From: Podarcis bocagei
Lineage: Eukaryota
NCBI GenBank assembly: GCA_964188305.1
Contig: OZ076896.1
Strand: one strand, 5' to 3'
Length of the DNA: 64,000 nt
This document shows, one piece after another, positions 2,644 through 46,926 of this stretch (positions are counted from its first letter, which is position 1; the number at the start of each line of letters is the position of its first letter). The notes under the pieces were generated by a model. The model saw only the letters and a list, made by a program, of their open reading frames with translations. It made no database searches and had not been told where the DNA came from. The position numbers and the translations under genes were made by a program.

Positions 2644-4100
2644 ATGCCACCAAAGCGTCAGGCTGCTTCTCTGCCCCGCATTAGAAGGGGCACTGTAAGG
2701 GGCGCGTCCACCAAGCCTGCCCAGATACAGGCCACTGGACAGCGTAAGGCGCGTGCGACCAGGGAGGAGCAGCCCAAGAAGACCGCGCCCAAGAGGGAAG
2801 CAGCACCTAGAGGGTCTTCTGGGTCCATAAGCCCACTAGCCATGGCGAGTCACGCCGGCAAGGGCTCGGCTGCCAAGCCGAGATGTACAGAGAGCTCCTC
2901 CTCTACCCGCTCCTGCCTTAGTAGCAGTCCCTCGCACCCGGTGCGTGGAGACAGTAAGGATAGGACCATTGCCCGGCTGAGGCGCCGCCTGGAGCAGCGG
3001 GATTCGCGCACAGGGCGCTCTGGGTCACCTCACAGCCGCAGGCAAGGGCGCAGTAGCAGCTCCGCTGACCGCCGTGTCCAGGAAGGCGCATCACGCTCAT
3101 CATCCCTAAGTCGCACAGATCGCGTCATCGTGGGAGGAAACACCGCAAATCCAGGAGGAGAGCCACAAGTCCAAGAGGGACTCTTCTGGATCATCTAGTT
3201 CCTCAGGTAGGTCCAGCTCCACTGATAGTACACGGGGGGGAGCATCAAAGGCTATTGGGTTACAGGCCCCCACGCCCCAGGGCTGCCGCACTGGGTCTGG
3301 CGGTGCCGCAACCGGAGGCACAGGCGTGAACATGGTGCTATTGCGCTGTGTGGCGAGGAGGGCATTGACTCCAGAGGTAGCATTAGGAAATCCAACTTCA
3401 AAAGAACTGACCAGCCCCCAGGCCTTCGCCTGCGCGAGAAGTTGCGGGAACGCGTCCTTAATGGGGAGTTTGTGGATTTGTTTGATCTGCTATCCCCTGC
3501 CTCTTCGACATGCCTAAAATCTAAATCCGCCAAGCAGAGGAAAAAAGATAAAAAAGTGAGTGTTGAGCGTACCTTTCGTAATTGGCTCACTGCATACACC
3601 ACTTACATGGGTATTATAGTCGCTAGTTATCCTGACAGGGGTTGGCACCTGACCAACTACCTACTTATCATCCTAAAGGCTGAAGCCATGTCTGGGGGGG
3701 GGAGGCGGCACTTGCCTATGACCAGGCATTCAGGGAGCGGGCGGCAGGGGACGACACAGCTAGATGGGATATCGAAGATGATGACGTGTGGTCTGAGTTG
3801 GTTGCCCCATTCTTCAAGAAAGGGTCTGACAATGTGAAACAGTCCAAATACCAATCCAAGGCCCCCAAGAGATCTTGCTGGGAGTATAACAATGGTTCCT
3901 GCTTCAGAGAAAAATGCCGATTTGCTCATGAATGCGAGCGCTGTAGTGGATCTCACCCACCACAAAATGTTTTTTGGGGTAGAAGTTTTTTTTCAAGGCT
4001 CCCGTGGATCAGGCGCAGGCACATCTCAAGACAAAGAGAGGCCGGTGCCTCTACAGGCTCCTCTGGCACACAGCAAAGCAAAAACAATGCCCGCAAATAG
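2644..4100 (+). pseudogene. gag-like ORF1 of Ngaro element, frameshifted
   Basis: Basic Ser/Arg-rich N-terminus (MPPKRQ...), conserved middle block (LNGEFVDLFDLL...FRNWLTAYTTYMGII...YP) and C-terminal zinc fingers CWEYNNGSCFREKCRFAHECERCSGSHP; split over several frames. Confidence 0.85.
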
Positions 4101-5437
4101 TGTTCTCCTTTCCCTAGCCCCCTCACCCGTATCTATATCAGCAATGCTGCCTTTTTACTCCAGTACCCCAATAAAGAGGCAGCAAAATACTTTGAGGAGG
4201 GCTCTAGGGAAGGTTTCCACATCCCAGTGGTAGTCACCCCTTCATGCACCAATCCCCCCAACCAAAAGTCTGTCTGAGATATGCCACACATTGCTGAGAA
4301 GAAGATCACCAAAGAACGTTTGCTGGGGCGAGTGGCAGGTCCCTTCTCAGAACCTCCATTTCCCACCCTCATAGTGTCTCCACCAGGTATCGTGCCTAAG
4401 AAGGCCCCAGGCGAGTTTCAATTAATACACAACCTTTCTTACCCAAAGGGTGGGTCAGTAAATGATGCCAATCCTCAAGAACAATGCTCAGTCAAATATG
4501 CATCTCTTGATCAGGCAATCAGGCTGGTTAGGGAGTGCGGCTCGGGCACGCTCACGGCAAAATGTGACATCGAATCGGCCTTCCGTTTGTTACCAGTCCA
4601 CCCCAGGGACTTCTGGTTGCCAGGTTTCAAATCATATCTGGGTATTGAACTGGATTCTGTCAGCCAAACCTATTTCCTGCCCCTAGCCGAACTCGCCACG
4701 TTGAGGGAATTGGTTACCACCACGATGGCCCAGAAAACGACTACGTTGCGTCAGGTCCAGACACTCTTAGGACACCTCTATTTTGAAGGCAGGGTTATCT
4801 CGCCCGGTTGCGCCTTTTGCGCACGCCTAGCCCGTCTCACGGCTGGTGGTGTTGCCCCCCACCACCACATCAGGGTCACTCATACCATAAGGGAGGACCT
4901 CAAAATGTGGCTGACCTTCCTGAAAAGTTACAATGGGGTATCCTTTTGGCGAGATTGGCCGCTGTTTAAGGAGCAGCTACATGTGCACTCTGACGCCTCT
5001 GGTCGCTCTGGCTTCGGTGTCTACCTCAGGGGTCACTGGCATGCGCAGCCTTGGCCGACATCTTGGCACGCAGAGGGCATTACACGCGATTTAACTTTTC
5101 TTGAGTTCTTTCCAATCCTAGTAGCTCTCCGGGTTTGGGGGACCTTCTCAAGGACACCAAGGTGTGCTTCTGGTCAGACAACCAGGCGGTGGTAAGAATC
5201 ATTGCGAAGCAATCTGCAAAATCCAACAGGGTAATTCGCGTGCTCCGTCTCTTCGTGCTGGAATGTCTGAAAGGTAACATCACCTTTTCCGCGCGGTTCA
5301 TCCCGGGCCTCAATAACGACATTGCAGATGCCCTGTCTCGCTTTCAGATGGAGTGTTTTGGTGACCTAGCACCCGAGGCCAATCAACTCCCAGAAGCCTT
5401 TCCGGAGGACCTCTGGGAACTTGGTCGAGAGAAGTGA
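4088..5437 (+). pseudogene. reverse transcriptase / RNase H of Ngaro element, RT core deleted, frameshifts and a stop
   Basis: RT N-half (GRVAGPF..SPPGIVPKK..LIHNLSYP..KCDIESAFRLLPVHP) joins directly to YLGIELDS with no YLDD. RNase H motifs SDAS, LEFFPI, SDNQAV, NDIADALSR are present, with a frameshift near 5140. Confidence 0.92.
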
Positions 5438-6345: not shown

Positions 6346-7309
6346 GCTCAACCCCCAAACTTCGGCCACAGCATTGTGCATTGGGCGGCCATCCATGCCA
6401 CCACTGGTCCAGGCGGAGAACATCTGGGTCTGCAGCCAAAAATCTCCATTGCCTGGTTCGGACAACGGGGAAGGCGTTGGGATCCCCTGCTCCCTCGGTC
6501 GCGTCATGAACTTGCGTTCCACGGTGGGATGCCCTGCTCCCTCGGTTGCGTCATGAACTTGCGTTCCACGGTGGGATGCCCTGCTCCCTCAGTTGCGTCA
6601 TGAACTTGCGTTCCACGGTGGGAAGCCCTGCTCCCTCGGTTGCGTCACGAACTTGCGTTCCACGGTGGGATGCCCTGCTCCCTCAGTTGCGTCACGAACT
6701 TGCGTTCCATGGTGGGATGCCCTGCTCCCTCGGTTGCGTCATGAACTTGCGTTCCACGGTGGGATGCCCTGCTCCCTCAGTTGCGTCATGAACTTGCGTT
6801 CCACGGTGGGAAGCCCTGCTCCCTCGGTTGCGTCACGAACCTGCGTTCCACGGTGGGATGCCCTGCTCCCTCAGTTGCGTCACGGACTTGCGTTCTGCCA
6901 CCCGCCAAGCGCGGTTGTGCTCCACCTCTGCGAAAATGACTTGGTTGTGCACAAAAGCATAATTTTGATCAAAACAGCGATCGCAGACCTGGAAAGCGTG
7001 CACGCCACTCACCCCAATATCACGATTTTCTGGTACGAACCTCTACCACGCTTGCATTGGCGTGGCAACATCAAACCCACTAGACTTAATTACACTGTGG
7101 AAAAAATCAATAGGGCAGTGCGCTCTGCAACCACTCGCATGGGAGGTCAGGTCATGAAACACCCCAACATTAAAGTTTACATGCAGGAGCTATTTCAGCC
7201 CGATGGCGTGCACCTATCGGACCTGGGTAATGAGCGTTGGCTGAGCGACATCAGGCATGGCCTGATTGATTGGTGGAGGATGGCAAAGGCGTCTTTCAGA
7301 TGTTGGTAG
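6346..7309 (+). pseudogene. SGNH/GDSL hydrolase ORF of Ngaro element, interrupted by a minisatellite
   Basis: Block I FGHSIVHWA, block II WFGQRG, block III VLHLCEND, block V DGVHL. SGNH hydrolase ORFs are known from vertebrate Ngaro-like elements. Confidence 0.85.
6478..6896 (+). repeat. 47-bp minisatellite, ~9 copies, with a 4-unit (188 bp) higher-order repeat
   Basis: Unit tgggatgccctgctccctcggttgcgtcatgaacttgcgttccacgg; the variant pattern of units 2-5 is repeated in units 6-9. Confidence 0.95.
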
Positions 7310-7342: not shown

Positions 7343-7752
7343 TGGCGGTATCAGGCCTTGGGCGGAATCCTTTTGTCCATCTTCCTCTTGCGGCGGCGAT
7401 ACCAGGGTTCCCCGTTAAAGGGGTTTTCTGAAGGGAGGCTTTGGCCGTACACCGAAAGGTCGTCATTGCTCCCTCCTGCGGCGGCGGCGTTACAGGGGCG
7501 GCCATCTCTGCTTGAACATATGTTCTCCAGAGCCGGCCCATCCCCCACACACACACTGGATAACCCTGATGCTCCCTAGGTCCCCGGCTGGGGACCGGGG
7601 AGGGAGAACGCCCAATGCCTGAGCCAAGGTCTACCCACATTTGAAATTTAATAAAGTTGTGGCCAATTTAATCCCATAGCACGTTGTCTTGAGTCGTTAT
7701 TCACATGACGGGGGGACCGTGCAGGATCTGGGGACTCCGCCTGTCCACGCAA
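7343..7752 (+). repeat. Ngaro split direct repeat B1 (AATAAA at 7650-7655)
   Basis: Matches 8202-8611 with two substitutions seen. Confidence 0.95.
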
Positions 7753-8014
7753 TGACCGCTCCCCGCTTAAAATGGGGGGCGCCCTTTGCGTGGACGCGTG
7801 CAGCCCCTAGATCTGGAGCGGCTCCAACAGCATAGGCTTGGCTTTGCCTTCCCTCAGGTGGGATACCTGGAGGTCTCCACCTACCTCAGTCAGTTGTCCA
7901 ATCCCACCTGGGGGAAGCGTTGCCAAGGAGACCAGGCCAGGTAGGGGAGGGATTACCTGCCCACACAATAGAGGGAGGATCTTACCTAGGAATCCACACT
8001 TGGCTCCAGAGCTT
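7751..8014 (+). repeat. Ngaro split direct repeat A2
   Basis: Copy of 466-729, directly abutting B1 through the shared AA. Confidence 0.95.
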
Positions 8015-8106
8015 CTCCCACCCTACCCACCCTCAGTTAAGGTCTTATTTTGCAGGTTAACTTTTCTTCACAGGTTTTGCAGGTTAACTTTACTTCACAG
8101 GTATGC

Positions 8107-8200
8107 GGGCGCTGCTACGTTAAGGTCGCTGTTAAAGGGCCGGAAAGGAATTTCCCTGCATTGGCAGGTTTCGCCTTTCCCGTAGCAAAACGTCACAACT
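8107..8200 (+). ncRNA. candidate structured cis-RNA element (ENE-like U-rich internal loop) in the A2-B2 spacer
   Basis: tgctacg/cgtagca, ggaaagg/cctttcc and cctgc/gcagg helices flank UUUC/UUUC; covarying homologues lie at 11760-11880(-), 28073-28193(+), 38448-38563(-) and, partially, 46596-46684(-). Confidence 0.6.
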
Positions 8201-8201
8201 T

Positions 8202-8611
8202 TGGCGGTATCAGGCCTTGGGCGGAATCCTTTTGTCCATCTTCCTCTTGCGGCGGCGATACCAGGGTTCCCCGTTAAAGGGGTTTTCTGAAGGGAGGCTT
8301 TGGCCGTACACCGAAAGGTCGTCATTGCTCCCTCCTGCGGCGGCGGCGTTACAGGGGCGGCCATCTCTGCTTGAACATATGTTCTCCAGAGCCGGCCCAT
8401 CCCCCCCACACACACTGGATAACCCTGATGCTCCCTAGGTCCCCGGCTGGGGACCGGGGAGGGAGAACGCCCAATGCCTGAGCCAAGGTCTACCCACATT
8501 TGAAATTTAATAAAGTTGTGGCCAATTTAATCCCATAGCACGTTGTCTTGAGTCGTTATTCACATGATGGGGGGACCGTGCAGGATCTGGGGACTCCGCC
8601 TGTCCACGCAA
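8202..8611 (+). repeat. Ngaro split direct repeat B2 (AATAAA at 8509-8514)
   Basis: Copy of 7343-7752; ends cacgcAA. Confidence 0.95.

Positions 8612-8612
<1 letters not shown>

Positions 8613-8656
<44 letters not shown>
8613..8656. repeat. (TG)n microsatellite
   Basis: Direct reading. Confidence 0.95.
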
Positions 8657-11324: not shown

Positions 11325-12142
11325 TTTGCGTGTTGAGTTCCACAGTGCCACCCCCCAAATAATTACACACTTCACACATCAATTTTTGTTTAAGGTTTTT
11401 TGGCATAAATTTTGGCCACAACTTTATTCAAAATACAAAAAATTGTGAGTGGTTGCTTAGGCATTGGTTATGACTATCTGTCCTGGCCCTCAAGGACAGA
11501 GCTGGCCCTTCCGGACTCCACCGGAAGCCAGCGTGGGAAACAAGTATTGGATAGAAGGGAGGCTGGGAAACAGGCCCTCACTTCTGACCCTCATGTTCCG
11601 GTGGGGCTTGCACGGCCCAAGTCTGGCTCCACGGACAAGGACAAAAGAATGGCAAGCCCCTGGATTCCTTTAACGGAATTCCCTTTCCGCATCATTTGGA
11701 GGGGTAGGCACTTACCCCTCCAAGCACCAATTAACCAATGCCTAACCGCCAACCTTACAAGTTGTGACGATTTGCTACGCAGTAGGCAAAAACCAAATGG
11801 CACCAGCCAATCAGCCAGATGGCAAAATTCCTACCGTGCCCCCGCACCAAGGCGAACGACACCATGACAGGCATAGCAAGGTCAAGCAATCAACTTAAAT
11901 AAAAAACCCCCCTATTGGAGGGAGGGCGGGTGATCCGATGCAAAACGGCCAAGAGGACGTCCCTACGTCTGGCCCTTCTATTTATAACTTCTGACTCCTC
12001 CTCCAAATTGGTAACAATCAATTTTCCCCCAGCAACCCGATTAACCCTAAAGGCCAGGGTTGCAGATTAATTTGCCTAGTCATGGCTGGGCGGCCTGTTC
12101 CCCAACCGCAACACGTGCTCTCTGTTAGGGAGAACACGCTTT
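11325..12142 (-). mobile_element. solo A-spacer-B unit of a Ngaro-related family
   Basis: On the minus strand it starts AAAgcgtgttctccc and ends cacgcAAA; contains TATAAATA, cacccgccctccct, the ENE-like motif and aataaagttgtggcc; homologous end-to-end to 27820-28647. Confidence 0.8.
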
Positions 12143-14652
12143 AATGTAAACTCTGGGTTACATATTGTAACGCATAACATTCCTTTCCATTTGGTTATCA
12201 CATTATTGTGTGACTTAAAAAAACAACAACAACCCAAACTCTTTAATATTTGTGACACTCACTGGTGATGGGCTGGATTTGGATGGGAGGCCAGGATATA
12301 TTATTTATTAATTATCCTTCCTCTTACTTCAGTAAGATTAGCATCTAGTTTAGAAGAGTTCAAAATGTACATCATCCTTTGCAGCTTTAACATGGAAACT
12401 TGGGTGGTCAAAGCTGTGTAGCTTTCTATAATTATCCAGGATGCCTTTGGCAGACTGGATCTTCTCCTTTTTTTATCCCTCTAAATAAAATAACAACACA
12501 GAAGTCTGTAATGTAAGAATATAAAAATATTGTTTACTTACATAAAGTTGCAGACACAATTCAAGCAGAAAGTGGTGAAATATGTCAGGCAAAATATACT
12601 TCTAGATTACAAAATACACGGCTTAGATAAAAGATGGTGCCTGTGCTCAGGAGCTCACAGAACCTGCATGATGATAAAGAGACTGTTCCTCAGATAGGAG
12701 GAGGTAATAAGGAGGTAATCTTCCTACCTGGGCAAGCAGAGGAAGTGACCTCACAGTGTGCCCTGTAGGAATCTGCAGGGAACTCCATGTGTTGCTCACC
12801 TAGCAAATGTGTAATTTTGTATTTTGACTGGAGCACCATTTTTCCATAAGTGGTGGGTAGCCAGGTGTGCAATGTCACCCTGCTTTGCCACTCTGATCTA
12901 ACGAAAGGTCCTGTCTCTATTCTGATATAGCTTAGTAATAATTTAAAAAAAATGATAAATTTAATAGGAAGATTGGTTGGACACCAGAGACTACCCAAAA
13001 AATACTACCCAAAAAATAGTAAGCAGTGACCATAAAGGGATGGTGACAGTTACTTTAATAGTTCACCCGAAGATTCTAACATTGCAAATATTTGTGTTTT
13101 CAGGCATTTCCACATAATCTACATGAATGCATTATCTACATAAACGATGTAAATAAAACAAAAAGAAAGAAACCCAGACCAGTGATTGCATGCACGCAAG
13201 ATTCTTGCATGTTGCCTTGTTGCTTAACTTATTGGTCATATTTAAGTAGCACATATATCATCACATTTCTGTAATCTGTCAGTGTGCAACAACCGTACAA
13301 GGCTGGTTATGGTTATTATTCTAATGTTGAAACTCTGTGCGTGTGTGCATGAGAGAAGCATGACTAAGGCCTCTCTCAATAGTGATTTCATAATACAAGA
13401 ATATTTGTAGTTCAGTCTCCTTGATGCTACATATACCAGTAGTCAAAACTGATGTACTTTTTAGACCAATGTAATGATTTATTTCTGAAGTGGTAAATAT
13501 ATTTTTAGAGTTTTCTTTTACCCTTCCAATTACTCTTATCTCAAACCACCTAAGGTAAATTTCTAATGTTTAAAAATATACAACGGTTTGCATAAAAAGT
13601 AAGGAAAGTAACCTTGAATTAAATACCTCAGGGGTAATATAATCTCAAGTAAATGACTCCAGAATGTCAGCTCTGTGGAAAGTGACTGCAGAGAACATTT
13701 TGTGTGAGCGTACGTGAATATGTGTGTGCAACATAAAGCACATTGGGGAGAACAATTCAGTGTTAATGACAATACTGTGCCCTTGTGTTTACCTTCCTTT
13801 GGAAAGAAAATGGGATGCCCAACTTTATCTTGCTCAGAAAATGTCTTCAGGCTTCCTTGCTGTTTTTGCTCTTAGTTAAAATTGTTAGTTATGTACCTCA
13901 GTCAAATAAATCTGTATGTTCTTAACTGTTTGTTTTTTTTAATTAAAAAAAAAATGCAACCCCCGGAATCTATTACAGTTGTGTTTACTAGGCTTTCAAG
14001 AAAGAGTGGATCCATACCTGGTTCACATATTACACAGAAGCAACAAAATGTGTTATCATAGATCTCATTTGCATTTAGTGCTGAGTTTAGGTGTGCCAAA
14101 GAGCTCCATGTAGGGAACTTGCTGCTGTGTGCCCAGACTCAGCAAAATTTCTTTCCTTTTGTATCAGTGAAGGGGGAGCAATCCTGCTTAGCGCTGGGTC
14201 CCCACTTTGTGCAGAGCTTTAAAGGCTCCTGACAACCAGACAGTGGTGGGCCTACATTTGGGGGCCCCTGAAGCTTGAACTGTTATGGGGGGGGGGAGCT
14301 TCACAACCAGCAACAAGGTCTGGGTAACCACTGCTATCAGTGAGTTTGTATCAGAACAGATTAACACAAATTCTACATGAGATTGCATTTTTGGGTATCC
14401 ACCTAAGTACATTCCTCTAAGGTCTTGGCCTGTGTTAAAAGGGGAGACAAAATACATTAGCCAACTTATCACAGCGCTCCACACTTACAACATCTGTGCT
14501 ACTGATTCTCAACCTTGGGACTGGTGAAATATATACAACCCTCTCCCCCACAACTGTACACGCGTGATTCAATTTGGGTCTACTAGACCCACAATTTTTA
14601 AGCAATGTGGACGAAAGTTGCTTCTGGGGACCCTCCAGGATTAGGGGCCCTG

Positions 14653-16545
14653 GCCTGACACTAGTACGAAAAGGGTGTTGGAGATAATCCAACAATTTGG
14701 CCAGGTAGCTGGATTTAAACTGAACAAACAAAAAACTAAAGTCTTAGAAAAAAATCTAACAGCCACGGAGAAGGAGAAATTTCAAGAAGAGACAGGATTG
14801 ACACTGGTTAAGAAGGTGAAATACCTAGGGGTTTATTTGACATCAAAAAATCTGAATTTGTATAAGGACAACTATGAAAAATGCTGGTCAGAAATTAAAA
14901 AAGATCTAGAAATATGGTCAAATTTGAAATTGTCAATGTTAGGCCGAATTGCAGTGATTAAGATGAATGTATTGCCTAGAATGTTATTTTTGTTTCAAGC
15001 CTTGCAGATTCTTGACAAGATGGATTGTTTCAAGAGGTGGCAGAAAGATATTTCGAAATTTGTCTGGCAGGGCAAAAAGCCCAGAATTAAATTTAAAATA
15101 CTGACAGATGCTAAAGAAAGAGAGGGATTTGCCCTGCCGGACTTAAAATTGTACTATGAAGCAGCAGCGTTTTGCTGGCTGAAAGAGTGGATGCTCCTCG
15201 AGAACACAGACATTTTGGATTTGGAAGGTTTCAATAATCCATTTGGTTGGCATGCATATTTATGGTACGATAAAATCAAGCTGCATAGGGCCTTTAAAAA
15301 CCATATTGTCAGAAAAGCATTGTTTAATGTTTGGATAAGATATAAAGATCTGTTGGAAAACAAAACCCCTAGATGGGTGTCTCCCGTGGAGGCTAAGGCA
15401 GTGAAGAAAATATGGAGGTCGGATGGCCGAAGTATTGGGAAATTTTGGAACAGGAGGGAGATAAACTGAAATTACAAAGTTATGAGAAAATGAAACATAA
15501 AGTACAAAATTGGTTTCAATATCATCAAATAATGGAGTTTTTTAAACAGGATAGGAAAATTGGCTTTCAGGTGGAAAAATCAAAATTAGAGACTGAATTG
15601 TTAGAACCCAATACTAAGAATTTATCAAGAATGTATAACTTGCTGCTGAAATGGAATACACAAGATGAAACAGTTAAATCGGCTATGATTAAGTGGGCAC
15701 AGGACATTGGTCATAACATTATGTTTGCTGACTGGGAGTGGTTGTGGAACACCGGTATTAAATTTACGGCATGTAATGCCTTAAAGGAAAACATTATGAA
15801 AATGACTTACAGGTGGTACATGACCCCAGTCAAGCTAGCAAAGATCTATCATTTGCCTGATAACAAGTGTTGGAAATGTAAAGAGACTGAAGGTACTTTT
15901 TATCACCTCTGGTGGACATGCCCGAAGATTAAGGCTTTCTGGGAAATGATATATAATGAAATGAAAAAGGTACTTAAATGTACTTTCCTTAAAAAACCAG
16001 AGGCCTTCCTCTTGGGCATTGTCGGCCAATTGGTGTCAAAGAGGGATAGAACTTTTTTTATGTATGCTACAACAGCAGCAAGAATACTTATCGCAAAGTA
16101 TTGGAAGACACAAGATCTACCCACTCTGGAAGAATGGCAGATGAAAGTGATGGACTATATGACATTGGCTGAGATGACTGGCAGAATCCGTGATCAGGGA
16201 AAAGAGACGGCGGAAGAAGAATGGAAGAAATTTAAAACTTATCTTAAGGACTACTACAAACTTGAGGAATGCTAGAATGTCGAGGTTCTCAGAAAAAAAA
16301 GGGTTACAGTGATATAAGATTAGATTAAAGAAAAGACTAAGACGATAGAGGTTGGAAAGAAAGATTTAGAAGTTGCTAAAAAAGTATGGACAATGGGATG
16401 CAGAAAGGGGGGGTATGGGGAAGTCCTGGAAAAGAGGTTTATGAAAAAATGTTATGAAATTATACGTGTTTGTATGTCTTTTTATGTGTTTGTTTGTCTT
16501 TAAAAAATTTTGTAAAACCAATAAAAAAATTCTATATAAAAAAAA
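14653..16545 (+). mobile_element. 5'-truncated L1-clade LINE with 3' UTR, poly(A) and 16-bp TSD
   Basis: TSD aggattaggggccctg at 14637-14652 and 16546-16561; AATAAA and A-tail at the 3' end; ORF2 homology. Confidence 0.93.
14675..16275 (+). pseudogene. L1 ORF2 C-terminal half (RT thumb to CCHC zinc knuckle), one frameshift near 15410
   Basis: KYLGVYLT, GRIAVIKMNVLPRMLFLF, FALPDLKLYY, CWKCKETEGTFYHLWWTC. Confidence 0.92.
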
Positions 16546-17464
16546 AGGATTAGGGGCCCTGAGGCTTAAGCTCCATTAGTTTCATAGTAGATCTTCTGCT
16601 GCAACCAGGTGGTCGCTGGCTCTTTGGGAGCAGCACAAAGCAGATTTGGTCAAGCCCCACCCATATCTTTATAGCATAAGGTATCATACAGCATAATATC
16701 TACATATCTCCTCGCTCCCCAGTGTAACTGGAGGATAGGAATGCTTGTCTGCAACAACAATGGACGTAAATGCAATATAGTAACACACACACACGACTGT
16801 AAAGATTTTAGAATTACCGCGTCTCACAGATGGCTGTCAGTTTACCTCAGATTCCATTCCATTTGCAAAAATACATTTTGCAGATCACTTATAAATTCAT
16901 TTATCCAGATGGCAATTAATCACAACTATCAAAATAGATTTGACAGTGCTTTACAATTGCCAAAGCAAATTTAGCGGCTTGTTGCATTATCTCCGTATTA
17001 TCATTAGCAAACAGCAATTAATTTTTGTTGTTGTTGCAAATTGGAATGCTATGGTCCTTTGAGGAGATAAGGAACAAAGCTTTGATTTGTACTTGCTTGA
17101 AAAGTGTGTCTTTCCTCACTTCTGTGTTACATAGAAACAGGGCTGGTTCCAGGTTTTGCTGGATGGGGGAAGGATTTGGCAGGACGTCCCCCTCTCCTCC
17201 CTCCATCTCCTGCAAAGAGAGAGGGCACATGGTGGTAATGGCAGCCGGGTGGCGCTCCTTGCCATTGCTGATACCTGCTTATGCACTTTGGGAGAAATAG
17301 CAAGGAGCAGCATCAGCTATCACGTGCTCACTCACCTTCCTTTTCCTTCTGGATGGCAGATCTTTGGCACACCAGTAAGCAAGCAAGCATCTCCAGTGGT
17401 GAGAAGAAGTATCCACCACAGTATCTACCCTGCCCAGCAGACAAAGAGGAAGAGATGTCATCAC

Positions 17465-27819: not shown

Positions 27820-28647
27820 AAAGTGTGTTCTCCCTCATGGAGAGCACAGGTTGCGGGCGGGGCTGACAAGACACCTCACTGTTACTAGGCAAATGGTTTG
27901 GCCATCCTTTAAGCAGGGGCGGGCTGTTACTGGGGAAATCTAGATGTTGCCATTTGTTGATTGACAGCCCTATTTGTTAAATACAATGCTCGCAGCGAGG
28001 AACTTCCTCTTTTCGCTGCTTACTTCGGATCACCCGCCCTCCCTTCCCTAATTTTAGGCTGTTTGCTTGACCTTGCTATGCATGTCATGGGGTCGTCTGC
28101 TTTGGGGCAGGGGCCTGGTAGGATTTTTGTCCATTTGGCTGATTAGTGTGTGCCACTTGGTTTTTGCCTACTGCGTAGCAAATCGTCACAACTTGTAAGG
28201 TTTGCGGTTAGGCATTGGTCTTGGAATTGGTTGGTGGAGGGGTATGGATTCGGCTATGCCTGCCCCTCCAAAATGCTGCTGCAGCTGCTGCTTCAAGGGT
28301 TTTCCATTAAAGGAACCAGGGGCTCCCCATGCTTTTGTCCGAAACCCCCTGGCAAGGGGCTAGGGCCACGCAAGCCCCTGGGAGCATTCTGGGGAGAGGT
28401 GAGGCATGGTTCCCAGTCCCATCTCTCTCCCCAAGTGACTTACCCTTGCTGACTTCACGGGGGGGTGTGAATGTCAGAGCTGTCCCCGGGCAGGGTCAGT
28501 TAGTGCTACCAATGCCTAAGCAACCACTCACATTGCTGTAATTTGAATAAAGTTGTGGCCCAAATTATGCCAAAAACCTTAAACAAAAATTAAGTGTCAA
28601 TTGTGTTTTTCTTTGGGGGGGGTGTCTTGGGGACCTCGCCGCGCAAA
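27820..28647 (+). mobile_element. solo A-spacer-B unit of a Ngaro-related family
   Basis: Starts AAAgtgtgttctccc, ends gcgcAAA; contains the ENE-like motif (28073-28193) and aataaagttgtggcc at ~28546. Confidence 0.8.
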
Positions 28648-31324
28648 ACCCTCTGCACCACCTTTCCTCAAAAACGGGGTGCTAATAAGTGGCCAGTAAT
28701 TAGCACACAACACTGGATCCAGGCTGGGCTTTTTATGGAATGGATACACCACCACCTCCTTAAATGGAGTGGCCCCACCCCATCATGGAATGACGCATTC
28801 ACTACACCATGAACCCACCTGTTCACCCCATTCCAGTTATCCTTAACCAGCCAAGATGACGGGTGTCTGCAAAGTAGGCTTGGTTTGCCTAAAATGTCCT
28901 CGCAGGCCAAATTCACTGGCCTAGCAGGTCTAATTAGACTCAGGGGCCAGAGGTTCCCCACCGCTAGAGTAGAGGCCACACTCATTGCATCCTTCGGTGA
29001 TATTAATATTAAAATGTTGAAAATGAATTCACAGTTTCACACAAAATTCGTTGATGGTGAAATGGACAAAGACATTTTGCAGAAGGAACTAAAGAAAAAT
29101 GCAAATTTGTCAGGGGCAAATTTGTCAATATTTCCCCACCCCCAGGAAATATTGGCTCAGAACTAAGACAGGATCAAAGCTGCAATCTTGATCTGTGGAA
29201 GGTCATATCACGCCGTGAGAGGCATTAGACATGAGGCATGATGAATTGTCAAAAAAAGAGCACCAAACATAACTTTTAAAGAAAGTGAACATATTTGTTA
29301 GAAGTTATCTTTAAAGCTGGCTAGAAATATTTTGGTCCGTTTTGTCTCTTCTTCAGTTTTTGTTTTTGTTGTTTTCTTATAATTGGCAACTTTCAGTAAA
29401 GGATTTAAATGGATAATTGTTTTGTGAATAGAGGCTAATTATGTAACAGTATGCAATAAAAAACACCAGTTGAATCATTGCAATGCCAATTATGGAAACG
29501 TATTGCTATTCCAGAAAATGTGACCTTTTCCAGCTGCTTAGCGCCTGCTATCTCTCAGCTGTGTGGGATAAAGATTTTCTTTCTTAAAACAACTTTTTAC
29601 AACCAAAACAATGATGCTTGGAACCTTAAAGTAAGAGGCATGTTATATCTGTATTTATTCAGAATCGCTATTAATAAATGGCGTCAGTCATTAGGAGCTG
29701 AAGCAACTTCAGTTAAAGATCACATTGAAGCACTCTTTGTTCTGTGTTTGTTCAGATCTTTCTTACAGATACCAGGTTCTTCCTCCTTTCTTTTTTACAG
29801 CTCCCTCCCTCCTTTACATGGTGGGTTTTGCTAGTTGTCCTGTTGGGGCTGATTAGGAACATTTTTGGGAGTCCCTGATTGGCCTTTGGGATGCTTGTTT
29901 TTCACGTACTGCAAACTGTTAGGTGATTCTGATTGGCTGCCGGAATGGCATGTATGAGTATTTGGTTTAATCTGCATTCAGTACACGCAGGTGAGGAAAT
30001 ATTAAGAACTGGTTTGTTCCGTGCCTTAGACATGGTTGGGTTAAAGGCACTCTTTAGTCACCTTATGTTGCCTTTGGCTTGGAGAGTCCTGGAGTGTCCT
30101 TTAGGCTTGGCATGCACATCTCAGTGAATGCTGGAAAGCAAGGCCAGAGTGCATGCATCAGGTTCACATACCCACTGTTTATATCGCATCATGGAGGAAG
30201 GGTTTTCTTCCAGTCCTTTGCTACATGGCCGGTTTGTGATTCTAAAATTCCCAGACTCCTATGATTTGATTAGTCTAGTTAATTACATTTACAGATCATT
30301 TAGTTTTGTAATTTTTAACAAATATAACAATTTCACCATATATTTTGCATTTTGAGTCTTATTTAATCGGTGTGTTGGCAATTTCCTATTTTCTCAGCCA
30401 TTTTTACCACAACTAGGCTTGAATGAATAAAAGTCATGCACCATGATGCAGCTCTACTCACATGCAAAAATGGTGTCTGTGTATGACTAGGTGTACTAGA
30501 GTAGAGATGGGGATACCAGACAACAACTGTGTTTGGACTGGAGCGGAGCTGAAATTTCCCAGGAGATATTTTCTCAGAACATTTCTGAGATTTTTCTTTT
30601 TATCATCCCATTGAAAAAGAATGCCACTTGGCCGGGTTTCCTCTGAATGTTTCCCACCATTTTGTTGTGCTTTGGGCCACCATTGCCACCACTGCAACAA
30701 TTGCATGGAACTCTGCTAGGTCTGGGGCAGTCTGGAAGATACAAAATGGAGACAAGACTGCCAACACAGTCGAAACGAAGGCACTGTCCTACTGTCACTG
30801 CTAATGATGAGCCCTACCCTTAGCAAAGTGTTGGAGAATTTATCTCCCCACTGGGGGAAAAATGGCAACTTGTTTCCCTCCCCAACACACACCCCAATTT
30901 CGCTGATACCAAATACTGTGAGAGGTTATTGGCTTTAACTCTTATAAATTGCTGCAAGGTTTTGTATTGAGAGTGCCTGGTGCATATTTCCTCATTGTGC
31001 TCCTGTTCTATTGCTTTGGTTTAAGAGTGTTGCTATTGTGATTATTAAAATTATTTTAAGGAACACTGGGAATCCAAACTGGAAATTAAGGATGGAGGAG
31101 GAATCCATTTTAAACCAATCATTACACTGAATTTGACAATTCTGGCCTGATCAAACTTTTCCTACTTAATGTCCGAAACACGTGTGCATTGTCAGTTGTT
31201 GTTTTAAACCCAAATAATTATATGCAGAACAATATGCAAAATATGTATATTATATGTATAAAATAGTCAAGCCCCACAGGGTACTAGGTTTCTGAATATA
31301 ATTTTGTAAATATTAATACATGAG

Positions 31325-38046: not shown

Positions 38047-38966
38047 ATTGTGTGGCAAGGTCCCGAAGCCTCCCCACTGTTGGAATAAAGACACTAGACA
38101 CAAGTATTTTAGGTTAATGGGCTAAAAACAGCCACAACTTTATTGGTTACAGAATGTGAGTGGTATTGGCTTAGGCACTGGAACCAAACCGACTATATCT
38201 TACTCCTGCCTGCCTGCAGGAAGTCTCAGAAGGGTTAATCACCAGTAGGGGGAGCCCTGCCGATGCTCATAAACTAGGAACTTCCCCAGGGTTGTGCCAT
38301 GGCCCTAGCCCCCACCTGGACTTTGGACGGGGCCATCCCCCCCCCTAGATTCCTTTAACAGAATACCCTTGAAATAGCAGGGGTAGGTGATGGCCACTAC
38401 CTCCCCTCACCTCCAACCAAATACTCCAATGCCTAACCACCTTACAAAGTTGTGACTATTTGCTACAGGGTAGGCAAAAAACCAAGTGGCTGGTGCCAAT
38501 TTGCCAAGTGGAAAAAAATTCCTACCAGGCCCCTTAACGGCGACCAACCGAGGTCCATAGCAAGGTCAGATGATTAAGTGCCTAAACATGGGGAGGGAGA
38601 ACTGTGAGAGTGGGAAACAGAAGAAAAAGCCTGCATATGGCCAGAAGCAGGGAGGGTGTCGAAAGCCCAGGCCTGTGCAAAACAAGGCTTTGTTTGCTGG
38701 CACTGCTTCTCCAAAGGCCAAAGGCAGATTTATTGTCGATTCTGGAGCCACGAAGCACGTCTGTGGAAATCAACCCTGTTTATTTCCAGCCAGAAGCCGA
38801 AAGGGGTGATTGGTCGGCCTAGTGAGTGACGCAGCTGGGGACTCCCTATGACGCTGGGGCTAACCACGCCCCCCTCACACGGGTCGAGCTCATGACCGGC
38901 CCACAACGCCATTTCCCCAGGGAAGGGAAATGGCTCTCCCATCAGCTTCAATCAGCATGTCTGATT
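38047..38966 (-). mobile_element. solo A-spacer-B unit of a Ngaro-related family, carrying a copia fragment
   Basis: ATT core at both ends; minus-strand end ccacacAAT; ENE-like motif at 38448-38563; aataaagttgtggc. Confidence 0.7.
38597..38790 (+). pseudogene. Ty1/copia gag-protease junction fragment
   Basis: ...KALFA...GRFIVDSGATKHVCGNQPCLF matches the copia aspartic protease motif (W/F)IxDSGATxHxC. Confidence 0.7.
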
Positions 38967-46589: not shown

Positions 46590-46926
46590 TGGCATTCAAA
46601 TGGTCAGTGCCAATCTGCCAAATGGAAAAATTCCTACCTGGCCCCTGTCCCAAGACAGGCAACCAACCAAAGTCCAAAGCAAGGCCAGAGGACATCTAAA
46701 ATAAAGGGCGGGTGTTCGGCAGCATGAAGCAGGTGCCTGACACATGTCACGCTGCCACTTTTATATCCCCCCACTATTACCCAACACAAAAGTGATTGGC
46801 CAAGAAGCTAGGGTGATCGTGGTGCCACCCTGGCATGACGGCATTACTCCACCCACACCTGGGGGGGGGGGAAGCGGCCTGGGGACCTGCCCACAACCAG
46901 GACCATCCTTAAAGATGATCCCACTT
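46590..46926 (-). mobile_element. 3'-truncated solo unit of a Ngaro-related family
   Basis: Minus strand: AAgtgg plus 5' hairpin, TATAAAA, cacccgccct, ccttgct...ggccaggtaggaatttttccatttggcagattggc, then truncated. Confidence 0.65.

Follow-up and report, generated by a model that had tools for sequence, protein, structure and literature searches.

The single-copy spacer between repeats A2 and B2 of squamate Ngaro elements encodes a structured RNA domain of about 130 nts, which we identify by folding and by covariance models. The domain is an undescribed conserved RNA family of these elements, and it is their only conserved single-copy non-coding segment. It is a real RNA structure of the sense strand, maintained by compensatory change. 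One arm of the fold carries a two-sided U-rich internal loop that resembles an ENE, defined as a stem-loop with a U-rich internal loop beside G-C pairs that take A-minor contacts (PMC7583470). Based on its architecture and position, we tentatively read the fold as an ENE whose U runs would capture the transcript's own poly(A) tail, and we place this reading somewhat short of even likelihood. The material is one strand of a 64,000-nt stretch of Podarcis bocagei DNA (contig OZ076896.1), which we call the window, and all positions refer to it unless another locus is named.

The fold carriers are supported as Ngaro-type tyrosine-recombinase retrotransposons by their RT, weak YR and SGNH hydrolase ORFs and by terminal repeats in the order A1..B1-A2-spacer-B2, which bears out the Ngaro relation proposed in a first-pass annotation of the window. 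Ngaro retrotransposons were reportedly described by Goodwin and Poulter in 2004, and the elements reported here are like their SGNH-hydrolase lineage of amphibians and reptiles, with ORF1, RT/RH, YR and SGNH hydrolase between split repeats A1..B1-A2..B2. The Ngaro descriptions that we consulted do not mention an RNA structure in the spacer. For element 1 of the window, the split direct repeats are 99.5-99.6% identical: A1 (466-733) corresponds to A2 (7751-8018, plus strand, 99.6%), which has a TATA-like gcttaaaatgg near its start, and B1 (7343-7752) corresponds to B2 (8202-8611, plus strand). The single-copy spacer between A2 and B2 occupies the 183 nts at 8019-8201 of the plus strand, and the fold lies in its 3' half. 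B2 includes an AATAAA at 8509-8514 followed by a GU-rich downstream element, and the B1 signal at 7650-7655 is its twin. The RT ORF of element 1 is fragmented, its region being split into several frames despite the near-identical terminal repeats; RT homologs in lizards, snakes and amphibians carry PF00078. The ORF at 6593-7309 matches GDSL_2 (SGNH hydrolase) with an E-value of 1e-3, below the Pfam curated cut-off. Element 1 also includes two tandem arrays, one with a 179-nt period in the 5' region (1045-1956) and one of about 11 units of 47 nts (6428-6944) overlapping the start of the hydrolase ORF. A (TG)n microsatellite at 8612-8656 abuts the 3' end of the element (..CACGCAA), and it is here that RNA reads from other copies enter different flanks.

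The fold consists of an outer stem, P1 (4 bp) and P2 (7-9 bp), leading to a three-way junction that bears a short side hairpin P2a (GGUCGC..GGGGCC) and the ENE-like arm. The arm is formed by helix P3, the two-sided U-rich internal loop and hairpin P4. The first-pass annotation had proposed nested helices in the spacer at 8107-8200 and similar copies near 28, 11.8, 38 and 46 kb; the letters it quoted are present in all five copies, and minimum free energy (MFE) folding of copies 1-3 (at 8.1, 28 and 11.8 kb), each alone, reproduces the same nested helices with z-scores of -2.0 to -2.3. In these three copies the pairs are ggcg/cgtc or tgac/gtca in P1, tgctacg/cgtagca or ttgctatgc/gcgtagcaa in P2, and ggaaagg/cctttcc or ggtagg/cctac in P3. 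For copy 1, the focal copy, the whole fold spans 8108-8194 of the plus strand in the MFE structure, and the model scores are 76.9 and 71.5 bits. Its helices are P1 (8108-8111 with 8191-8194), P2 (8113-8119 with 8181-8187), P2a (8124-8141) and P3 (8142-8148 with 8174-8180), the P4 hairpin is at 8155-8168 (with loop AUUG), and the internal loop reads AAUUUC on the 5' side (8149-8154) and UUUCG on the 3' side (8169-8173).

Copy 2 (28060-28205, plus strand) has its ENE-like arm at 28117-28171, which reads GGUAGG-AUUUUUGU-CCAUUUGGC..GCCACUUGG-UUUUUG-CCUAC. Copy 3 (11748-11892, minus strand) has loops AAUUUUG and UUUUUG and is 76% identical to copy 2 over 588 nts. Copy 2 lies within a solo A-spacer-B unit at approximately 27825-28640 and copy 3 within another at approximately 12138-11335. 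Each unit is about 800 nts long, with a TATA box in A, the fold, and the poly(A) signal AATAAAGTTGTGGCC in B. The solo units are either products of recombination between A1 and A2 or small non-autonomous units, and they could be transcription units for an RNA of about 550 nts. Copy 4 (38436-38576, minus strand) has its arm at 38526-38469, composed of GGUAGG, AAUUUUUUU (38520-38512), CCACUUGGC..GCCACUUGG, UUUUUUG (38481-38475) and CCUACC; the sequence AAUUUUUUU-CCACUUGGC..GCCACUUGG-UUUUUUG is thus present as quoted for the 38-kb copy, although the MFE structure of this copy on its own misfolds the arm. Copy 5 (46596-46695, minus strand) is partial, as had been claimed: it has the 5' half of the fold, is cut within the 3' strand of P4 and continues into unrelated sequence. 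The covariance model R1, built from these five copies and covering only the RNA region of about 140 nts, matches exactly the same five copies in the window. The broader model R2, restricted to the same region, adds a sixth, an old decayed remnant at 29810-29936 of the plus strand (32.3 bits, E-value 4e-07) that retains GGAACAUUUUU, CUGAUUGGC and GUUUUUC. The lacertid P4 (28131-28160, 11811-11792 and 38511-38482) has a conserved 2x2 pyrimidine-pyrimidine mismatch (UU/CU, UC/UU or CU/CU) between segments of 3 bp and 4 bp. Its apical loop includes AUUGGC in every copy, which corresponds to CCAAT on the opposite strand.

Covariation was measured on a model-derived alignment of 12 sequences from 6 species. 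Standard pairs occupy 95.3% of the pair cells; sliding the partners by 1-3 columns lowers this to 40-46%, and column shuffles give 75%. Both partners vary in 28 of the 35 pairs of this alignment, its covariation score of 0.59 compares with 0.08-0.13 for slid partners, and none of 500 shuffles reaches any of the pairing or covariation measures. Because the alignment is fitted to the model, we made a structure-blind alignment and single-sequence folds as independent checks. The structure-blind MAFFT alignment analysed with RNAalifold recovers P3, with five of its seven pairs compensated, and the single-sequence MFE folds of each homolog give the same architecture. There are 49 G-U pairs and one A-C pair, and 96% of the cells are paired in the sense orientation compared with 82% in the antisense. 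The excess of G-U over A-C indicates that it is the sense RNA that folds, in agreement with the compensated sense-strand structure that the first-pass annotation had proposed.

Genomic loci from other species were reached from RT homologs. The model search places the fold 2.1-2.6 kb downstream of the RT in five other species: Podarcis muralis (146 bits), Hemicordylus capensis (two loci), Eublepharis macularius, Erythrolamprus reginae and Anolis carolinensis. All six loci have the layout A1..B1-A2-[fold]-B2, and the identity of their repeats is 98-100%. The distance from A2 to the start of the fold is 4-9 nts in five of them and 39 nts in the Podarcis locus L002, and the fold occupies approximately 70-87% of a spacer of 155-189 nts. 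One Hemicordylus element (L003) has repeats 100% identical, U runs of 7 and 6-7, and four open ORFs encoding ORF1, RT, a weak tyrosine recombinase and the hydrolase. Its domain matches are RVT_1 (7e-12), Phage_integrase (1e-3, weak) with a SAM-like N domain (3e-3), and GDSL_2 (2e-4), the recombinase and hydrolase matches falling below the curated Pfam cut-offs. With four open ORFs in L003 and near-identical repeats at all six loci, the fold is a fixed part of young, apparently competent elements.

From 5' to 3', the consensus of the arm is a lower stem ending in GG, AA followed by 3-7 U, a hairpin, 3-7 U followed by G or CG, and CC as the first bases of the lower stem's 3' strand. The upper hairpin P4 begins with CC (or GC) and ends in GG (or GU). 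Both sides of the loop are U-rich in all 11 complete copies, with at least five consecutive U on both sides in seven and at least four in nine. The longest U runs (5'/3') are 7/6, 5/5, 4/5, 3/4, 3/3, 6/5, 7/6, 6/5, 6/7, 6/4 and 5/5, and the lengths on the two sides correlate (r = 0.71). The U tracts are conserved in that runs on both sides persist in lacertid, cordylid, gecko, snake and anole elements, five squamate lineages, despite sequence turnover in P2, P3 and P4. Above the loop, C-G and C-G (or G-U and C-G) pairs directly adjoin the U runs. Below it, the lower stem has G-C at both pairs nearest the loop in 10 of 10 copies of the structure-blind alignment and in 11 of 12 of the model alignment, and the distal pairs covary; AA (5' strand) and G or CG (3' strand) stand between the U runs and these near-invariant pairs. 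The proposed ENE layout stands as regards the helix, the two-sided U-rich loop, the second helix, the CC..GG closure and the lower G-C pairs, and it departs from an ENE in the AA/(C)G spacing and in the focal copy. With AAUUUC/UUUCG and only U3/U3, the copy at 8107-8200 has the poorest loop of all, in an element with terminal repeats 99.5-99.6% identical. The Podarcis element L002, with 100% identical repeats, has loops AAUUUA/GUUUUG (U3/U4). Short U runs in such young copies suggest that long runs are dispensable for some copies that moved recently, and the variants among reads of the family, 8154 C>T and 8172 delC, show that the focal loop drifts. The apical AUUGGC and the P2a hairpin GGUCGC..GGGGCC are conserved in sequence; an ENE needs neither, and they point to an additional or different ligand.

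Rfam 15, which possibly includes no ENE model, gave chance-level matches only (miRNA, snoRNA and bacterial sRNA) when the whole window was searched at the gathering score and three copies at E-values up to 10. A strict descriptor with at least five U on each side and stems of at least 4 bp recovered four homologs; we dropped it as a test because it missed the lacertid copies through the 2x2 mismatch in P4 and picked up a small number of AT-rich sites by chance.

Exactly one AAUAAA follows the fold on the same strand in nine of nine copies, at a distance of 297-430 nts and together with a GU-rich downstream element. None of the nine has an encoded run of at least five A upstream of the AAUAAA, which leaves the poly(A) tail as the only A-rich partner. 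RNA-seq over 7751-8625 (two bulk sets, one single-cell set and one contig set) gives thin cover of both strands, with no A-tailed ends or pile-ups. In lacertid and cordylid copies, the start of the B repeat is predicted to pair with a stretch 1-25 nts before the AAUAAA, closing B into one domain. The cores of this closure are GGUUAGGCAUUGG/CCAAUGCCUAA in lacertids and CAGUGCGGG/CCCGCACUG in cordylids, at 8202-8240 with 8470-8492 and 28206-28225 with 28508-28525 of the window and in the B2 repeats of loci L003 and L009. The pairing exceeds that of shuffles in five of nine copies and does not in the gecko, snake, anole and second cordylid copies. Where it forms, B closure would bring the tail close to the ENE-like arm. 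We also considered a tRNA primer-binding site at the TGGCGG that starts B, and rejected it by eye, its complement being unlike a tRNA 3' end.

As an ENE, the fold may work as follows. The opposed U runs would form U-A-U triples with a portion of the poly(A) tail on the same transcript, and this capture would slow the decay that depends on deadenylation. The poly(A) signals of B1 and B2 are identical, and the spacer would be present only in RNA that reads through B1 and ends in B2. Since the spacer is restricted to read-through RNA, the element would favor its full-length RNA, which alone would hold all the information for transposition. Poly(A) binding, stabilization and selectivity for read-through RNA are what we infer from the observed position of the covarying sense-strand fold, its conserved U runs and the signal downstream. 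We consider it unlikely that the fold goes as far as a true poly(A)-clamping triple helix that selects the full-length RNA over the shorter mRNA, with the solo units as genes for stable, PAN-like polyadenylated non-coding RNAs. If this were true, tyrosine-recombinase retroelements would gain their first ENE, of a structurally distinct subtype with AA/(C)G spacing and set within a three-way junction.

Tested examples of ENEs come from herpesvirus lncRNAs, MALAT1/MEN-beta and a few plant transposons. The KSHV PAN ENE has a single domain, and its U-rich internal loop forms five U-A-U triples and A-minor contacts with oligo(A). The Ngaro fold is like it in the two-sided loop with about five U per side, the upper C-G closure, the G-C pairs of the lower stem and the position upstream of a canonical poly(A) signal. 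Unlike the PAN ENE, which belongs to a viral lncRNA, the Ngaro fold has AA and (C)G between the U runs and the lower stem, its arm branches from a three-way junction whose side hairpin is conserved, as is the apical loop, and it lies in a retrotransposon, 297-430 nts from the signal. ENEs of plant and fungal transposable elements were reportedly described by Tycowski et al. in 2016. Like these, the Ngaro fold sits in the spacer before a 3' terminal repeat that bears the poly(A) site and has U-rich loops with G-C flanks; the tested ENE of the Arabidopsis retrotransposon Evade/Copia93 lies in a spacer just upstream of the 3' terminal repeat (PMC12501189). Most plant ENEs of this kind have a double domain with four U tracts, unlike the single-domain Ngaro fold, and their plant and fungal hosts are LTR, hAT and similar elements, whereas the host here is a vertebrate tyrosine-recombinase element. 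In Evade, the G-C pairs abut the U runs directly and are essential (PMC12501189), whereas the lower G-C pairs of the Ngaro arm do not abut them. The MALAT1/MEN-beta ENE, in a vertebrate RNA with a protective triple helix, shares the U-rich internal loop with the Ngaro fold, for which a triplex is putative. MALAT1/MEN-beta has C/G interruptions in the loop and an encoded A-rich tract that RNase P exposes by cleaving the RNA; the Ngaro fold has neither an encoded A tract nor a tRNA-like structure, and a normal AAUAAA is present.

The chief rival to the ENE reading is that the fold is a recognition signal specific to the genomic RNA that serves packaging, the initiation of reverse transcription or template switching. 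An element protein (ORF1/Gag-like or RT) or a host protein would bind it, with the U runs as the binding surface. We regard this as rather unlikely, even if several observations fit it: the elements have just one single-copy non-coding segment, the fold takes up essentially all of it and occurs only in read-through RNA, the conserved loop and unpaired motifs (AUUGGC, the GGUCGC/GGGGCC hairpin and GGAAUUU) resemble contacts for a ligand, copies whose U runs are short moved recently, and the GUCACA[A/G]C..UUGGCGG kept at the spacer/B2 edge where the fold is missing indicates further cis signals. On the other side, the partner protein remains hypothetical, and two matched U runs with G-C flanks are the signature of an ENE, not of known packaging or priming signals. 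Families that lack the fold and have near-identical terminal repeats also argue that it is not universally needed for the steps of replication. More improbable is a U-rich upstream element that boosts cleavage and polyadenylation at B2, as U3 does for a retroviral 3' LTR, and so distinguishes B2 from B1. The identity of the B1 and B2 signals, with the fold preceding B2 only, agrees with such a role, and in lacertid and cordylid copies the predicted B closure puts the fold near the AAUAAA. Known upstream elements of polyadenylation, however, act within about 100 nts, and the fold is 297-430 nts upstream of the signal. A linear U-rich motif needs neither 35 covarying pairs nor matched U runs on two sides, and a full-length RNA requires that B1 be skipped, not that B2 be strengthened.

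We give very little probability to a DNA regulatory element, such as a reverse CCAAT box (ATTGGC) with neighboring promoter or enhancer motifs, to which the RNA fold would be incidental. The apical loop has an invariant ATTGG and the lacertid B repeats hold additional copies, as such an element would have it; against this stand the compensatory change in 28 of 35 pairs and the 49 G-U pairs versus one A-C, which fit sense RNA only, and a protein-binding DNA site would not keep its pairing through sequence change. A self-cleaving ribozyme, the alternative named in the first-pass annotation, finds some encouragement in a three-way junction within a retroelement, and several retroelement families carry ribozymes. 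Several findings speak against it: no Rfam ribozyme family is matched, even at E-values up to 10, the junction strands are short and variable, and the conserved bases are in the internal and apical loops and not in a junction resembling a catalytic core. We consider a ribozyme extremely improbable.

We found no description of the Ngaro spacer fold in Rfam or in the literature searched, and no publication that connects triple helices with Ngaro or DIRS elements. The novelty that had been claimed for the fold holds to this extent; as a vertebrate first it is tempered by ENEs in stickleback fish retroviruses, which a review lists along with ENE-type elements in a slime mold (PMC7583470); transposon ENEs of plants and fungi are listed in reviews too. 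Genome-wide ENE searches, as summarized in reviews, report no squamate matches (PMC7583470). If the fold is an ENE, capture of the poly(A) tail would extend to vertebrate tyrosine-recombinase retroelements, the fold would offer a structurally different subtype for probing the real requirements of the triplex, and it would suggest a way for an element whose two poly(A) sites are identical to favor its full-length RNA. Even if it is not, it constitutes an undescribed conserved RNA family in geckos, lacertids, cordylids, anoles and snakes. To our knowledge, transposon-borne ENEs in animals are almost unknown, and we know of essentially no studies on the RNA biology of vertebrate tyrosine-recombinase retroelements.

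Some elements lack the fold. The young family at the Anolis sagrei locus L001 has a spacer of approximately 90 nts without it. The Gastrophryne carolinensis element L012, also young (repeats 100% identical) and with the split-repeat layout A1..B1-A2..B2, has a 380-nt AT-rich spacer that is unstructured (z +0.26) and without the fold; this spacer has two encoded A runs of 17-18 (11737-11753 and 11838-11855 of that locus). Outside squamates, the models do not match in Xenopus laevis (L006), Leptodactylus (L008), Hyla (L011) or an AT-rich genome (L010), the best score of this search being 10.7 bits for a sequence that is unstructured when folded. Split repeats are not recognizable at the frog loci L006, L008 and L011, so that the absence of the fold there says little. 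The A. sagrei Ngaro is embedded in and followed by satellite arrays with a period of approximately 90 nts (4000-4900 and 11760-17200 of its locus), and a duplicated B copy lies inside the array at 13622-13921.

Two motifs mark the edges of the spacer. The boundary with B2 has GTCACAACT (GTCACAGCC in the frog) followed by TTGGCGG, at 8192-8200, 28185-28193, 11768-11760 and 38456-38448 in the window, 11454-11462 in L001 and 11967-11985 in L012. GTCACAACT has four exact matches in the window for 0.6 expected, and GUCACA[A/G]C..UUGGCGG is common to lacertid, A. sagrei and frog elements, even without the fold. The A2 edge is spanned by a C-rich motif resembling CACCCGCCCUCCC in lizards, a snake and a frog, at 8019-8040, 28031-28045 and 11930-11917 in the window, 11576-11590 in L007 and 11592-11606 in L012. 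The fold-less A. sagrei and Gastrophryne elements retain both the C-rich motif at the A2 edge and GUCACA..UUGGCG at the B2 edge, which indicates that the spacer carries other cis signals too. In MFE folds, the C-rich edge motif pairs with a GGAGGGG just past the fold, forming an outer helix P0.
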